A stretch of 64,000 bases of DNA. It comes from Salpingoeca rosetta (Eukaryota; Protista; Choanoflagellata). Position 1 is the stretch's first letter, and every line of letters begins with the position of its first letter. The position numbers and the translations under genes are program-made. Under the pieces are notes generated by a model. That model was given only the letters and a program-made list of their open reading frames with translations, was not told the DNA's origin and made no database searches. The stretch spans positions 238,064 through 302,063 of the forward strand of contig JAWQFM010000014.1 of assembly GCA_033442325.1 (NCBI GenBank), written 5' to 3'. Shown here one piece after another: positions 57,331 to 61,970 of the stretch.

Positions 57331-60300
57331 CTACAAGACAATGTTGTCGATGAGACGGACCCCACCGAGCGTGGCGGCAACGGAGATGCAGACGCGCTGC
57401 GAGTCGCCTTCAATGGGCCAATCCACCAAAGGCTCCATGGTCGTGGCGTCAGCAACGTCAACATAGTGCACAGCAAGCTCGGGCACCTGGCGAAGCACCG
57501 CAAGCGCCTCCTGCTTCAGCCGCGGCGGGCTGCGCTCCCCTCGCTCGTACGCCTGCCGCGCCGCGCTCAGGCTCTGCGACAGGGCAACTGCCTTGGGCCG
57601 CAGCTCGGGCGGCAGGCGCACGTTGCGGCTGCTCATGGCCAGGCCGTCCGGCTCCCGCGCCGTCGGCAACACGCGGAGGTCAACGTCAAAGTTGAGGTCG
57701 CGGACCAGGCTGCGGATCGTGGCACACTGCTGCGCATCCTTCTGTCCAAAGTACGCCACGGCAGGCCGCACAATGTTGAACAGCTTGGCCACCACCGTTG
57801 CCACGCCATCAAAGAAGTGCGGCCGCGACTGGCCCTCCGCAAGTCGCGTGGCGTTCTCAATCACAACCCGCGCGTTCGGTGGGCCGTGTGGGTACATCAC
57901 CCGCGTGGAGGGCGCAAAGATGGCATGCACCCCCATGCGGGACAGCACGGCCACATCCTCCTCCAGCGTCCGCGGGTACGTGTCAAGGTCCTCGTGGGCT
58001 GCAAACTGAAGCGCGTTCACAAACACGGACACCACCGTCGTGTCACACTCCTGCAGCGACTGCTCCACCAGGCCCAAATGGCCCTGGTGCAAGCAGCCCA
58101 TCGTCGGTACAAACCCAACCACGCGTTCCCCATGAATGGGGTTCGTCGTAGTGGCAGCAGTGGTAGTGGAATTGTGATTGCTGTTGCTGTTGCTGCTGTT
58201 GCTGCTGTTGCTGTTGCCGCTGTTGCTGTTGCTGCTGGTGCTGTTGCTGTTGCTGTTGGTGGTGCTGTTGCTGTTGGTGCTGTTGCTGTTGGTGCTGTTG
58301 CTGTTGGTGCTGTTGCTGTTGGATTGATGGTGGAGGTGTGTCCGAAATGCTCGCATCTGCTCAATGGTGTGCAGGACAAGAGGCGACGATGCTGATGCCG
58401 CATCACCAGCCAACGCTGATGCCGCTGTTGCTGGCGCTGATGATGACAGGGGCGGCCGGTCCGCTGCCGTTGGTGCCTGTTGGAAGACGGTGGGAATAGG
58501 CATGTGGCCCAGCGGTGGCATCTGCGGCATGACGGGCTCCAGCGCAACGGTGGACGCAGCCGTGGCCTTTGCATTGGACAGAGCCTTCACGCCATGCAAC
58601 AGGCTTGCGTTCATGGGTGTCCGAACACGCATCGCCTTGCCCTCCTTGACCACGTGCCCTGAATGGCGAATGTGTGTGTGTGTGTGTGTGTGTGTGTGTG
58701 TGTGTGGGTGTGTGTGTGTGTGTGTGTGTGTGTGTGTGTGTGTGTGTGTGTGTGTGTGTGTGTGTGCGTACATGAGTTTGGTTGCGAGTTCATCAGTGCG
58801 TATGCGTGTGTGCGTGTGTGCAAAACATGTGCGTAATGAGTGCGTGCAAAAGCCACCGATGATAAGCATTCCATGAACGAACCAAAACCACACACATCCA
58901 ACAGTCAACAACGTGCAGCGCAACTAAGACATGCCCCGCCCGACACGACACACACGCACGGGCATATTTATTCATCTGTACATTACGTGCATGCACGCCT
59001 TACTCAAGCACAACGCACCGTTGATGTAGTCGATTTCCGTGGCAACACCCCGCCGCACATCCGCAAGCATGGAAGAGAAGTTGGGCGCCGTGTTCCTGAG
59101 GACTGTGTGCACCTGATCCAAAGGATCCTCAAACGGAATCACAATCCCTTTGCGCTCAGCAACAGCCATCACTTCGGCAACAACATCTGCCCACCCATGC
59201 AAAAGTATCGAAGTTGGTACGCAGGTACAATCAAACATCACACAAATCATCAGCCATCAGAAACAACGTGATGAGCACCACAAAGAGATGTCACTGCGTG
59301 AGAGGGAACCAAACTAAAACAGAGAACAAGCTGTCACATCATGTCAGCACACACACACATGCACACATACACACACATGAATTCTCATGCACACACACAC
59401 TTCTCACTCACTCACGCACACACACAAGAACACACACACACACACAAGCGCACACACAAGCACACGCACGAACGCTCACGCCAACACACACACACACCTC
59501 CACATGCAAGCACATACACACACTCTCACATGCAAACGCGCACATAGAAACCCCAAGCAAAGACACCTTCGATGATGGAGAGTGCTTCAGAAGACTCGAG
59601 GAGCTGCCCGTTGGGAACATCCATGATTGCCGTGATGGGGTTGATGGCGCAGTTGATGAGCAACTTGCCCCACACCACGGAGTTCATGGCGCGCTGGTCG
59701 TCAATTTGCTTGCAGGCAAAACCGGCACTTGACAGTAGCGCCGTGACAAGCTGTGCAGCATGCACGTCGCCACCGCCAGCGATGAGCGTATCGCCGCGAC
59801 CGGTGTGTACGACCCGACCTGGCCGCTCGATGCGCGCTCCATCCGTGGTGACACCAGCAACAACCGCGTGGTGGGGCAGCTCTCTGCTCAGGGCCTGGTG
59901 GTTGCCCACGCCGTTCTGCAATGTCACCACCACTCCGTTTGGGCGGAGGAGCCGCCGTGCAACGCGGGCTGCCTGAGGGGTTGTCGCAGACTTTGTCATC
60001 ACAATCGCCACATCAGCCATTGGCGGCCCACTACAAAGCATGCGTGCAAGCATGCATACGTATGTATATGCATATGTGTGAATGCATACGTGTGAATGCA
60101 TATGTGTGAATGCATGCGTGTGTGTGTGTGTGTGCCGAACGTGAGACGTGGAACGGAGCAACTGTTCATGTATACACACACAAACACACCATGCAAGCCA
60201 TGGTATACGCGTACACGAATCGATCGTAAACACACAAACACGCATCACACATGCACAAACAAACACACACAACAAACAAACAAACACACACAAACAAACA

Positions 60301-61970
60301 CAAAGTACAAAACACACACACATACACACACAAACACACACAAAACAAGCAAACACACACACACAAACAAGTCCACGTCACAATACACGCATAAGCGTTC
60401 ACTTGGAAACGTGCCTGAGGGTTTCAGCGTTGAGCACGATAGCTCGAGACGTCACTGGGTCGGTGTGAGTGGCAGCTGCAGGCGATGCTGTGCCATCCAC
60501 CAGCTGCACACCACCCTGCCGTTCAATGGCATGAATCTGGTCCTGCCACGACGTCACCAGGAACACGCGGTGCGCCAGCGTCTCCCCAAGGCGGGCAGCC
60601 AGCAAACTGCCCATGGCTCCGCCACCAATCACGGCAACATTCAAGTCCTCGTGTGCCAGGTCCGCGTCAACGGTGGCGGACGATGAAGAACCTCTCGAAT
60701 CGAGGCCACGCGTGCTGCTGTGGTAGGAGCGGCGGCCCTGCTTGCCCGCACCATGGCCATGGCCCATGCTGCCATTGTTGACAGCCGCCCGCGCACGCTC
60801 GACGGCGCTTGCAGCGACAGAAGGCGCCTTCTCCCGGAACGAACTCAGCACCGCGGACTTGATGAGAAACGTGTGCTCCTTGGTTGGGAAAGCGCCAGCC
60901 TGCACATCTGCGTGAAATGAACGCAGGGCATCGGCGATGATGGCGCCAGCCTGCGCGTACTGCTTGGAGAACTTGGGCACAAACTTGTCGAACATGCCAA
61001 CAACGTCGTGAAAGACGAGCACCTGCCCACTGGAGCCGGCGCCTGCGCCTATGCCAATGGTCGGGATGCTAAGCTGCTGCGTGATATGCTCCGCAATCTT
61101 GCCAGGCACCATCTCCAATACAATGGCGAAGCAGCCAGCCTCCTGCAGGAACATGGCGTCCTCCAGCAGCTTGAGTGCCGCCGCCTCGCTCCGGCCTTGC
61201 ACGTGATATCCGCCCATGGCCGATGCCGTCTGGGGCGTGAGGCCAATGTGGCCCATGACAGGCACGCCCGCAGCCACGAGACTGGTGACCTGGTCGATGA
61301 CCGCGGGCGCGTGCACGCCACCCTCCAGTTTCACTGCATCCGCACGGCCCTCCTTGACACAGCGCACGCCATTGTCCACCGCAGCATCTGGGCGGGTATA
61401 GCTGCCAAAGGGGAGATCGCAGATCACGAGCGGCCGGTGCGGTGCCTGTTGGGGTGCGCCATCAAGCGCGCGCGTGACCGCGGCACAGTGGTGCACCATC
61501 TCGTGCATGGTGACCTGCGTCGTCGAGTCGTAGCCGAGCATGACCTGGCCAAGAGAGTCGCCTACAAGCAGCATGTCAACACCAGCACCGGCCGCAAGCC
61601 GTGCCGACGTGTAGTCGTATGCCGTGATCATGGAGAGTGGAGTGCCCTGCGCATATGCCGCGTGAATGCTGGGGATCGTCACCACGGTTCTTTGATTCGC
61701 CGGCACTGGGGCGGCAGAGGCAGAGGAAGATGGGCTGGACGCTTTGGGCGGTGATGGCGATGACGATGGCGATGATGATGATGACTGCGCGTTGCCGCTT
61801 CCTCCAGCACCGTATGGCGAAGAGGCCGAAGAGGCCGAAGAGGCCGACAGCGATGTACAAGTTGACGACAAGCAGCGCGCCACGCATGGCGAGCGCAGCA
61901 CAGTTGCGCTGGTGCTGGCGGAGGCGGCATGCCGCAGCAGCACCTGTAAGCCACGCTGCACCACGCTCAT
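57331..61970 (-). CDS. panB-panE-panC: Trifunctional pantothenate biosynthesis protein: ketopantoate hydroxymethyltransferase + ketopantoate reductase + pantoate-beta-alanine ligase
   Basis: Exons 61970-60403, 60030-59567, 59186-59019, 58658-57331 total 3528 nt (1175 aa + stop), all GT-AG and phase-compatible. PanB: MITAYD, LLVGDSLG, AVKLEGG, GHIGLTPQ, PTIGIGAG, GQVLVFHD. PanE: VIGGGAMG, TKS, LQNGVG, WGKLLINCAINPITA, SSMLADV, TEIDYING, TPMN. PanC: GFVPTMGCLHQGH, SVFVNALQF, EDLDTYPR, RPHFFDGVATVVAKLFNIV, AYFGQKDAQQ, REPDGLAMSSRN, RLIDN. Confidence 0.93.

Follow-up and report, generated by a model that had tools for sequence, protein, structure and literature searches.

Does one gene encode three consecutive enzymes of pantothenate (vitamin B5) synthesis in a choanoflagellate, and do they stay joined in one polypeptide? 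The question is raised by a Salpingoeca rosetta gene on the minus strand at positions 57331-61970 of the window, i.e., of the whole 64,000-nucleotide stretch of DNA that was analysed, where four exons carry a single frame encoding PanB, PanE and PanC in pathway order. This arrangement had been proposed in a sequence-only reading, and the Pfam domains were indeed found in order on four minus-strand ORF pieces, with the ends placed exactly (the stop codon ends at 57331 and the A of the ATG is at 61970) and with both domain junctions lying inside exons, the frame being open through each. The protein is already catalogued as RefSeq XP_004993709.1 / UniProt F2UAL1, and all four Pfam domains are precomputed on that database entry.

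Gene Structure and Transcripts

The transcript evidence came from the runs X4 and X6, which belong to different studies and are evidently RNA, and from X21, a set of raw stranded RNA reads. One contig (X4 record 2) extends from 62166 to 58327 with all three introns removed; it starts in the 5'UTR, continues through PanB, PanE and the following linker, and includes the first PanC strand-helix before it ends at 58327 (residue 840). A second contig covers 58155-57229 on the side of the PanC core. Transcription from the minus strand is recorded by the raw stranded reads, with the first mate on the + strand, introns at near-zero depth and four reads on the GC-AG joint. Expression of the gene is low, with a depth of 1-5x in about a quarter of two 6-Gb runs. 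The 171-nt Asn/Ser-coding repeat at 58156-58326 was skipped as a repeat during read mapping and is unbridged by the RNA contigs and reads.

The 5'UTR extends at least over 61971-62166, the contig being gapless from 60415 to 62166. The coding part of exon 1 (60415-61970, from the ORF and Pfam) contains the N-terminal extension, PanB, the PanB-PanE linker and the start of the PanE Rossmann domain, with the GGGAMGS motif at 60606-60626, and its end is set by the joint 60030/60415 in the X4 and X6 contigs and in the four X21 reads. Intron 1 (60031-60414, 384 nt) is of the GC-AG type, seen as a skip of 384 nt bounded by CT..GC on the + strand, and the same junction is shared by the RefSeq protein. 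A GT donor at 60402, 12 nt downstream, which gives a 1175-aa model, was ruled out by the contigs and reads showing the GC donor at 60414. The length of about 1175 aa proposed earlier was therefore corrected, the RNA-supported product being of 1171 aa (about 122 kDa).

Exon 2 (59567-60030), covered by contig pieces over the same positions, encodes the end of the Rossmann domain (LQNG) and the start of the C-terminal domain of PanE (WGKL) according to Pfam. Intron 2 (59187-59566, 380 nt, GT-AG) is fixed by the joint 59186/59567 in the X4 and X6 contigs, and exon 3 (59019-59186, also represented by contig pieces) continues the C-terminal domain with SSML and TEIDYIN (ApbA_C 41-101, 5.5e-15). For intron 3 (58659-59018, 360 nt, GT-AG) the record places contig pieces 58327-58657 and 59018-59186 next to each other, the join yields ...EIDYING|HVVKEGK, and the resulting length agrees with the PanE structures; the junction peptide GHVVKEGKAMRVRTPMN given earlier was correct, with the donor at 59018. 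The strong-looking donor GTAAGG at 59003 was ruled out by the RNA contigs and by the length match of PanE to solved structures. Exon 4 (coding part 57331-58658, within an ORF at 57331-58923; Pantoate_ligase 2.8e-93) holds the end of PanE, the PanE-PanC linker, the whole of PanC and the stop codon (57331-57333). The 3'UTR covers at least 57229-57330 (X4 record 1 and X6 record 6, both 57229-58155 with more letters beyond) and runs into a repeat, a 26-nt tandem repeat being located by the tandem-repeat search at 57177-57281. The spliced contigs from two runs thus confirm that the gene has three introns, all of them within PanE.

The gene is located in a scaffold of 1.67 Mb, and profile searches with PF02548, PF02569 and PF08546 found panB, panC and an ApbA_C-type panE as the sole copy each in the S. 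rosetta genome, the PF02548 match to the PanB region scoring 348 bits. The RNA-based model is identical to P0151, the sequence of RefSeq length whose residue numbers are used below where so marked, apart from one 35-aa stretch.

Domains, Linkers and Catalytic Residues

The N-terminal extension (residues 1-90, 61701-61970, minus strand, as are all features below) is rich in Ser, Ala and Arg, with the first acidic residue at position 119, and has a pLDDT below 50 in the AlphaFold2 model (P0151 residues 1-55); in other triple fusions 33-110 aa precede PanB. It may represent a mitochondrial presequence together with a low-complexity tract. The fold of PanB, ketopantoate hydroxymethyltransferase, follows at model residues 91-400 (60771-61700; PF02548, 1.6e-103), with exon 1 matching the Pantoate_transf profile over 2-258 of 259 at 346.1 bits (cut-off 28.7) and then ApbA 1-42. 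The domain aligns to M. tuberculosis PanB 1oy0 with 217 bits, has a pLDDT mostly of 80-97, and retains the motifs VGDS, DLPFGSY, KLEGG and LEMVP in alignment with 1oy0. The Asp of VGDS, the Asp of DLPFGSY, the Lys and Glu of KLEGG and the Glu of LEMVP are presumably metal-binding or catalytic, as in the E. coli and M. tuberculosis enzymes; D103, D150, K179, E181 and E251 (P0151 numbering) are invariant across 22 triple fusions. The PanB-PanE linker of about 40 aa (60651-60770) is rich in Gly, Ser and His and is free of Pfam matches, with a pLDDT below 50 at P0151 367-405.

PanE was recovered exon by exon, with ApbA at 27.3 and 67.5 bits (cut-off 22.2) and ApbA_C at 33.1 and 56.3 bits (cut-off 22.7), exon 2 carrying ApbA 65-145 and ApbA_C 3-44; the spliced domain aligns at full length with 6k1r/5zik (113 bits). 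The motifs GGGAMGS (the GxGxxG NADPH motif), LQNG, WGKL, SSML and TEIDYING are present and invariant in the triple-fusion alignment, as are the residues G414, G416, G419, N523, K606, S677 and E689 (P0151 numbering) across the 22 proteins, and we take the motif residues to be the equivalents of E. coli Asn98, Lys176, Ser244 and Glu256. The PanE-PanC linker (58390-58560, about 57 aa, rich in Ala, Pro and Ser) has a pLDDT below 50 at P0151 728-784 and is joined to PanB and PanE in one RNA contig.

The Asn/Ser repeat had been read as a part of this linker and was found instead inside PanC, between the first strand-helix and the PTMG strand, by both the family alignment and AlphaFold2. The N-terminal strand-helix (LVLHTIEQMRAFRTHL..., 58312-58389) was modelled as a strand at 788-790 and a helix at 793-809 with a pLDDT of up to 93, and its R797 and R800 show a conservation of 90% or more among the 22 triple fusions. 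The Asn/Ser/Thr-rich insertion encoded by a (CAGCAA)n-type repeat follows at 58132-58311 (pLDDT below 50 at P0151 811-870; tandem repeat at 58178-58321, period 6/15). The alignments to Pfam and to PDB chains (phmmer) start only after the insert, while AlphaFold2 and the family alignment put the first strand-helix upstream of it; the Pantoate_ligase match in exon 4 (profile 19-268, 312.4 bits, cut-off 20.7) begins at 19 in S. rosetta, whereas for most of the other triple fusions scanned it begins at 1-3. The core of PanC, pantothenate synthetase (57334-58131, RNA contig 57229-58155), contains the HIGH-type motif PTMGCLHQGH together with NALQF, GQKDAQQ and MSSRN and scores 238.7 bits to T. maritima PanC 2ejc. 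VNALQF in place of the usual VNPxQF is the one deviation among its motifs, and H885, H888, Q912, K1001, Q1005, R1039 and N1040 (P0151 numbering) are invariant across the 22 triple fusions. The early impression of intact catalytic motifs therefore holds for all three domains, in agreement with solved PanB, PanE and PanC structures.

The Proposed Trifunctional Product

Very probably, the nuclear gene of XP_004993709.1 / F2UAL1, once its three introns are spliced out, gives one trifunctional polypeptide. Its chain would start with the acid-free, Arg/Ser/Ala-rich extension, followed by a Mg-dependent PanB TIM-barrel expected to convert alpha-ketoisovalerate and 5,10-methylene-THF to ketopantoate; after the first linker, the two-domain PanE reductase would convert ketopantoate with NADPH to pantoate; and after the second, PanC, of the nucleotidyltransferase fold and bearing the insert of about 60 aa in its N-terminal loop, would join pantoate and beta-alanine with ATP to pantothenate via pantoyl-adenylate. 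Judging from the conserved residues, all three activities are likely to be functional. The extension may direct the product to the mitochondrion, as with T. gondii KPHMT-KPR; yeast and plant KPHMT are mitochondrial. The very large channelling assembly proposed in the sequence-only reading is speculative. AlphaFold2 returned three separate confident folds on low-confidence flexible linkers (pTM 0.40), and the benefit of the fusion would appear to be stoichiometric co-expression and co-localisation rather than a fixed channel. Since each domain has its sole genomic copy here, the fused gene is plausibly the whole pantoate-to-pantothenate machinery of the organism.

An alternative that we regard as rather improbable is that the one gene supplies separate enzymes, either through cleavage of the imported precursor in its disordered linkers, in the way known for yeast Arg5,6, or through an internal start giving free PanC beside PanB-PanE. 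The length and low confidence of both linkers would suit such processing, and in-frame Met codons occur at residues 773, 776 and 785 just upstream of the PanC fold, with another (831) within its first helix. The word depth of the PanC-side contig also exceeds that of the PanB-PanE contig (111 vs 78 in X4 and 45 vs 13 in X6), which could reflect either 3' bias or an extra shorter transcript. However, the raw-read depth shows no step up at the PanC boundary, the contig of PanB and PanE extends through the linker into PanC, whose first strand-helix it includes, and no cleavage motif was identified. Moreover, the fused order is kept in 22 non-redundant proteins of distant lineages, as would be expected if the fusion is functional. 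The predicted product would probably remain one chain.

Distribution and Origin of the Fusion

The sequence-only reading knew of no characterised three-way fusion, yet the architecture is present in the databases, in many protists and in acoels, and is in print for chromerids (PMC8717973). The order PanB-PanE-PanC was the same in 31 of 31 triple-domain sequences, 22 of them non-redundant, the larger number including the S. rosetta gene's own model, isoforms and near-identical copies. Besides S. rosetta, the triple architecture is shared by four more choanoflagellates, two acoel genomes and about 15 further, mostly environmental clusters; complete ORFs were found in the de novo transcriptomes of S. 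infusionum, Choanoeca perplexa and Stephanoeca diplocostata, and a predicted product of 1116 aa in Barroeca monosierra. Thus, the fusion is widespread, as had been allowed for, but a biochemical characterisation of a PanB-PanE-PanC triple fusion was not found in the literature search, nor was a paper linking choanoflagellates or acoels with a pantothenate-synthesis fusion; Salpingoeca, Monosiga, Vitrella and Chromera were all absent from the supplements of PMC8764084. The statement that animals lack the pathway also has its exceptions, the two acoel genomes that encode the same triple fusion.

The gene is assigned to a eukaryotic family of pantothenate-pathway fusions. In the tree, all triple fusions and some eukaryotic PanB-PanE fusions form one clade with a support of 98/98 and an interior polytomy, which adjoins the amoebozoan PanB-PanE fusions. 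A fused bacterial operon as the origin, which had also been suggested, is thus without support, the nearest relatives being eukaryotic PanB-PanE and triple fusions, and a recent acquisition of the fusion from bacteria as a fused panB-panE-panC operon is very improbable. Among stand-alone PanC proteins, bacterial ones come closest (those with names are from Chloroflexota MAGs, at 49-54% identity), and the best PDB match of each domain is bacterial as well. Nevertheless, bacterial triple fusions were found neither among the best 150 listed matches of an exhaustive HMMER scan of 1.84 billion representatives nor among the best 120 listed in a length-matched search of 5.8 billion proteins, and wherever a source or genomic neighbour is visible, it is always eukaryotic (choanoflagellates, acoels, a metagenome contig with a coronin neighbour). 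The gene itself, with three spliceosomal introns, sits in a megabase-sized scaffold, and the panE gene of E. coli lies apart from panBCD, which likewise counts against an operon. The remaining explanation, an assembly or annotation artefact joining adjacent genes, to which the unbridged repeat and the one 105-nt in-frame intron by which RefSeq differs from the RNA contigs might point, is effectively refuted by the spliced RNA contigs from independent studies, the frame open through both junctions and the same architecture in the de novo transcriptomes of other choanoflagellates.

Being common to craspedid and acanthoecid choanoflagellates, the triple fusion was probably present in the choanoflagellate ancestor. 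The resolution of the PanB-only FastTree (240 rows) does not suffice for counting fusion origins; in this weakly resolved tree the named dinoflagellate PanB-PanC proteins lie elsewhere and a few other PanB-PanC rows near the triple fusions. The AU test gave p = 0.058 for the five named choanoflagellates as one clade; p = 0.0036 for an exclusive group of these with the two acoels, an ill-posed test in that P0153 and P0158, environmental and maybe choanoflagellate, were forced outside; and p = 0.09 when these two were included, a group chosen after seeing the tree. It is a tentative and somewhat unlikely proposal that the synthase predates the split between choanoflagellates and animals and reached acoels by vertical descent. 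If this is true, vitamin B5 was synthesised in the stem lineage of animals, most of which came to need it in the diet through a later loss, and B5 prototrophy persists in some extant animals (Convolutidae acoels). As a further, similarly tentative possibility, the fused chain may assemble around an oligomeric PanB core to form a large particle.

Significance

S. rosetta, a model choanoflagellate, would very probably synthesise pantothenate from ketoisovalerate with a single gene product, and its B5 prototrophy may reasonably be supposed; a search for PanD in S. rosetta, as a source of beta-alanine, found none. This bears on the nutrition of S. rosetta in co-culture with prey bacteria and on the timing of the loss of vitamin B5 synthesis in animals. 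The discovery value is limited, since RefSeq and UniProt already list the protein with its domains and the architecture has been remarked for chromerids. The triple-fusion enzyme is widespread in protists, and S. rosetta, being genetically tractable, would lend itself to questions of fusion integrity, localisation and channelling.

Comparison with Known Systems

The bacterial stand-alone PanB (1oy0, 1m3u), PanE (1ks9, 5zik) and PanC (2ejc, 1mop) align with the S. rosetta domains over nearly their full length with conserved catalytic residues (217, 113 and 239 bits, respectively), but they are three proteins, whereas S. rosetta has one chain, extended N-terminally by about 90 aa and bearing the Asn/Ser insert of about 60 aa in PanC. 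The bacterial PanB is a decamer, PanC a dimer and PanE a monomer or dimer. The two-domain fusions of eukaryotes and metagenomes are built from the same domain families and unite only two of the three activities: PanB-PanE in Balamuthia, Planoprotostelium, Acrasis kona and Cardiosporidium; PanB-PanC in Symbiodinium natans, Polarella glacialis and Scrippsiella; and PanC-PanB and PanE-PanC.

A trifunctional ORF has been described in Vitrella and Chromera (PMC8717973), and "one ORF spanning all 3 genes" is given for Vitrella brassicaformis and Chromera velia in the legend of Fig. 1 of PMC8764084. The chromerid KPHMT-KPR-PBAL ORF resembles the S. rosetta gene in having three activities in one frame, both being known from sequence alone; it differs in lineage (Alveolata vs Choanoflagellata) and in that the chromerids retain KPHMT and KPR as separate genes as well, the fused copy being the only one in S. 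rosetta. The Toxoplasma gondii KPHMT-KPR, reported to be mitochondrial, shares the position of PanB N-terminal to PanE and an N-terminal extension (PMC8764084, PMC8717973), but its PBAL (PanC) is a separate protein of 88 kDa, reported to be nuclear, whereas the PanC of S. rosetta forms the C-terminal third of the chain.

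Gene structure and transcription

The open frame, the order of the Pfam domains and the spliced RNA contigs give good support, in both DNA and RNA, to the reading of one trifunctional gene for PanB (ketopantoate hydroxymethyltransferase), PanE (ketopantoate reductase) and PanC (pantothenate synthetase). The gene occupies 57331-61970 of the minus strand, where ORF and Pfam analysis places the domains on four long open pieces in pathway order: Pantoate_transf (PF02548, 1.6e-103) running directly into ApbA profile positions 1-42; the remainder of ApbA with the first part of ApbA_C; a central stretch of ApbA_C; and the PanE C-terminus followed by Pantoate_ligase (PF02569, 2.8e-93). 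The limits proposed in the sequence-only reading, a start ATG at 61970 and a stop codon ending at 57331, are exact in the ORF model.

The RNA data placed on 57100-62200 comprised the raw stranded reads of two runs (X21 and X22) and contigs assembled from two others (X4 and X6), the latter being spliced and, therefore, evidently RNA. One record each in X4 and X6 is a gapless join of 58327-58657, 59018-59186, 59567-60030 and 60415 onward, extending in X4 up to 62166, which confirms the three predicted introns, all within PanE, with the same donor at the intron 3 junction (...EIDYING/HVVKEGK). Intron 1 is a 384-nt GC-AG intron with its GC donor at 60414 (window 60413-60414, CAG/GCACGT, minus strand), the joint being backed by 4 X21 reads; this non-canonical donor is used despite an in-frame GT 12 nt downstream. 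A first gene model with canonical splice sites and 1175 open codons was overruled at intron 1 by the RNA contigs and reads. Exon 1 is thus four codons shorter, and the predicted product has 1171 aa (~122 kDa) in place of the ~1175 aa of the sequence-only reading. In the raw reads, the first mate lies on the plus strand, consistent with a minus-strand mRNA, and the depth is 1-5x in the exons and near zero in the introns.

A second contig in both X4 and X6 (57229-58155) covers PanC and the 3'UTR. The gap between the two contigs, 58156-58326 (171 nt), shows no direct RNA continuity, the hexanucleotide repeat there being skipped in mapping. The word depth of the PanC-side contig is above that of the PanB-PanE contig (111 vs 78 in X4, 45 vs 13 in X6), and an additional short PanC-side transcript besides the fusion mRNA is therefore possible; the fused chain may also be processed proteolytically. 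A separate gene for PanC is unlikely, since the PanB-PanE contig extends as far as residue 840 in the 1171-aa model and thereby carries the true PanE-PanC linker and the PanC start.

The RNA-based model equals the RefSeq protein XP_004993709.1 except for one 35-aa stretch, as the RefSeq model cuts a 105-nt in-frame GT-AG "intron" (61810..61706, minus strand) from the Ser-rich N-terminus. The segment 61706-61810 is kept in the X4 and X6 RNA contigs, and the RefSeq splice joint is not listed among the reads. Depth spikes (up to 1050 in X4) with many loose ends at 61717-61887 are cross-mapping of other transcripts with similar Ser-codon repeats onto this Ser-rich coding region. The X21 and X22 reads also show an 'opposite strands' joint 57265/58444 (57245-57265 and 58423-58444), with C>G at 58437 and constant loose ends; these look like reads of another transcript with a shared short low-complexity stretch and no feature of the fusion gene.

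Domain structure and predicted localisation

AlphaFold2, with an alignment of 22 triple fusions as input, confidently models the folds of PanB (56-365, RefSeq numbering), PanE (406-727) and PanC (785-810 and 871-1136), the low-confidence stretches being 1-55, 367-405, 728-784 and 811-870. The element 785-810, which folds as one strand followed by one helix (pLDDT up to 93) and has two arginines at least 90% conserved in the triple-fusion family, is in this model the normal first strand-helix of PanC; the PanC Pfam match begins at profile position 19 in S. rosetta and at positions 1-3 in most other triple fusions scanned. Since this strand-helix precedes the Asn/Ser repeat, the latter, earlier taken as part of the PanE-PanC linker, is by both the model and the family alignment an insertion in a loop inside PanC. 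This tract of ~60 aa is coded at 58178-58321, (TTGCTG)n on the plus strand with period 6/15, and it is at its repeat that the de novo transcript assemblies break.

All three domains are matched essentially over the full length by known structures of bacterial enzymes, PanB by M. tuberculosis 1oy0 (217 bits), PanE by 6k1r/5zik (113 bits) and PanC by T. maritima 2ejc (239 bits). The catalytic motifs are intact, as had been read from the sequence: the metal-, cofactor- and substrate-binding residues, whose roles we take to be those of their counterparts in E. coli and M. tuberculosis, are present in S. rosetta and invariant across the 22 triple fusions. The three pantothenate reactions are textbook chemistry, and the fusion would have the benefit of assured 1:1:1 expression and co-localisation. 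A pTM of 0.40 and the length of the linkers (40 and 57 residues) speak against fixed relative positions of the domains within one chain; PanB-type oligomerisation into a larger particle and channelling of intermediates are both hypothetical.

The N-terminus has no acidic residue in its first 118 positions and is rich in Arg, Ser and Ala over the first 94, and other family members have 33-110 residues ahead of PanB, which together suggest a putative mitochondrial presequence. The KPHMT-KPR (PanB-PanE) protein of T. gondii has been reported as mitochondrial (PMC8717973).

Genomic context

In the 55.4-Mb assembly (window C14:238064-302063), the fusion gene is the sole match to PF02548, PF02569 and PF08546 in a genome-wide profile search. 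A PanD-type aspartate decarboxylase was not found genome-wide, so beta-alanine must come by another route, and a yeast-type spermine route is conceivable, as S. rosetta is reported to have a functional spermine synthase (PMC12803844). Downstream, a 621-aa ORF (54593-56458, minus strand) matches PPC (pre-peptidase C-terminal) only below threshold, with 24.8 bits vs the cut-off of 25.9, and a 727-aa ORF (52017-54200) is without a Pfam match. In the 3'UTR, a 26-nt unit is repeated in tandem 3.8 times (57177-57281); over 57229-58155 the X4 and X6 contigs have 26 letters more than the same span of the window, most likely by one added repeat unit (assembly collapse or variable copy number).

Phylogeny and origin of the fusion

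In the maximum-likelihood tree (33 full-length rows, 895 columns), all triple fusions and five PanB-PanE proteins form one clade (98/98); the PanB-PanE fusions of named Amoebozoa and Heterolobosea, plus three others, fall outside it. The four craspedid choanoflagellates form a clade (100/98), the acoels group with them and with one environmental sequence at 87/91, which is not decisive, and Stephanoeca stands with another environmental sequence in a polytomy. The simplest reading would be a stepwise fusion inside eukaryotes, PanB-PanE first, with PanC joined later. The closest stand-alone PanC are bacterial (~50% identity), the named ones being Chloroflexota MAGs. A transfer from a Tetraselmis-type symbiont to the acoels is not indicated, as the green-algal PanB in the set are stand-alone. 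The transfer of a fused bacterial operon, suggested earlier, is not supported, given the clade with eukaryotic PanB-PanE fusions and no bacterial triple fusion among the matches listed by profile scan and length-matched search.

Relation to known fusions

Among the sequences gathered from public data, 63 have the arrangement PanB-PanC, among them those of the dinoflagellates Symbiodinium, Polarella and Scrippsiella, while 11 are PanC-PanB, 45 PanB-PanE and 3 PanE-PanC; the pantothenate pathway has thus been fused repeatedly. The order PanB-PanE-PanC was found in 31 rows, 22 of them non-redundant, and all triple fusions whose source is named or whose genomic neighbour can be seen are eukaryotic. 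The rows include four other choanoflagellates, from both orders (Salpingoeca infusionum, Choanoeca perplexa, Stephanoeca diplocostata and Barroeca monosierra), and about 15 further clusters, mostly environmental assemblies, one of which adjoins a coronin gene. The most interesting by-product is the same fusion gene in two animal genomes, the acoels Symsagittifera roscoffensis (row P0261, XP_063722099.1, 1053 aa, 61.6-Mb scaffold) and Convolutriloba macropyga (row P0270, XP_075239960.1, 1041 aa, 89.3-Mb scaffold), both RefSeq models on chromosome-scale scaffolds, with every catalytic residue kept and two annotated isoforms each.

A trifunctional ORF has been noted for the chromerid algae Vitrella and Chromera (PMC8717973), one ORF across all three genes has also been mentioned in PMC8764084, and the literature search found no paper characterising a PanB-PanE-PanC enzyme or tying choanoflagellates or acoels to such a fusion. 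The architecture is not novel: besides its occurrence in these other organisms, the length-matched database search found the S. rosetta protein already catalogued (EGD73427.1, XP_004993709.1, UniProt F2UAL1). The catalogued protein has 1136 aa, carries the four Pfam domains and is encoded on a 1.67-Mb scaffold. The S. rosetta fusion is a catalogued further member of a known, biochemically uncharacterised kind of fusion.
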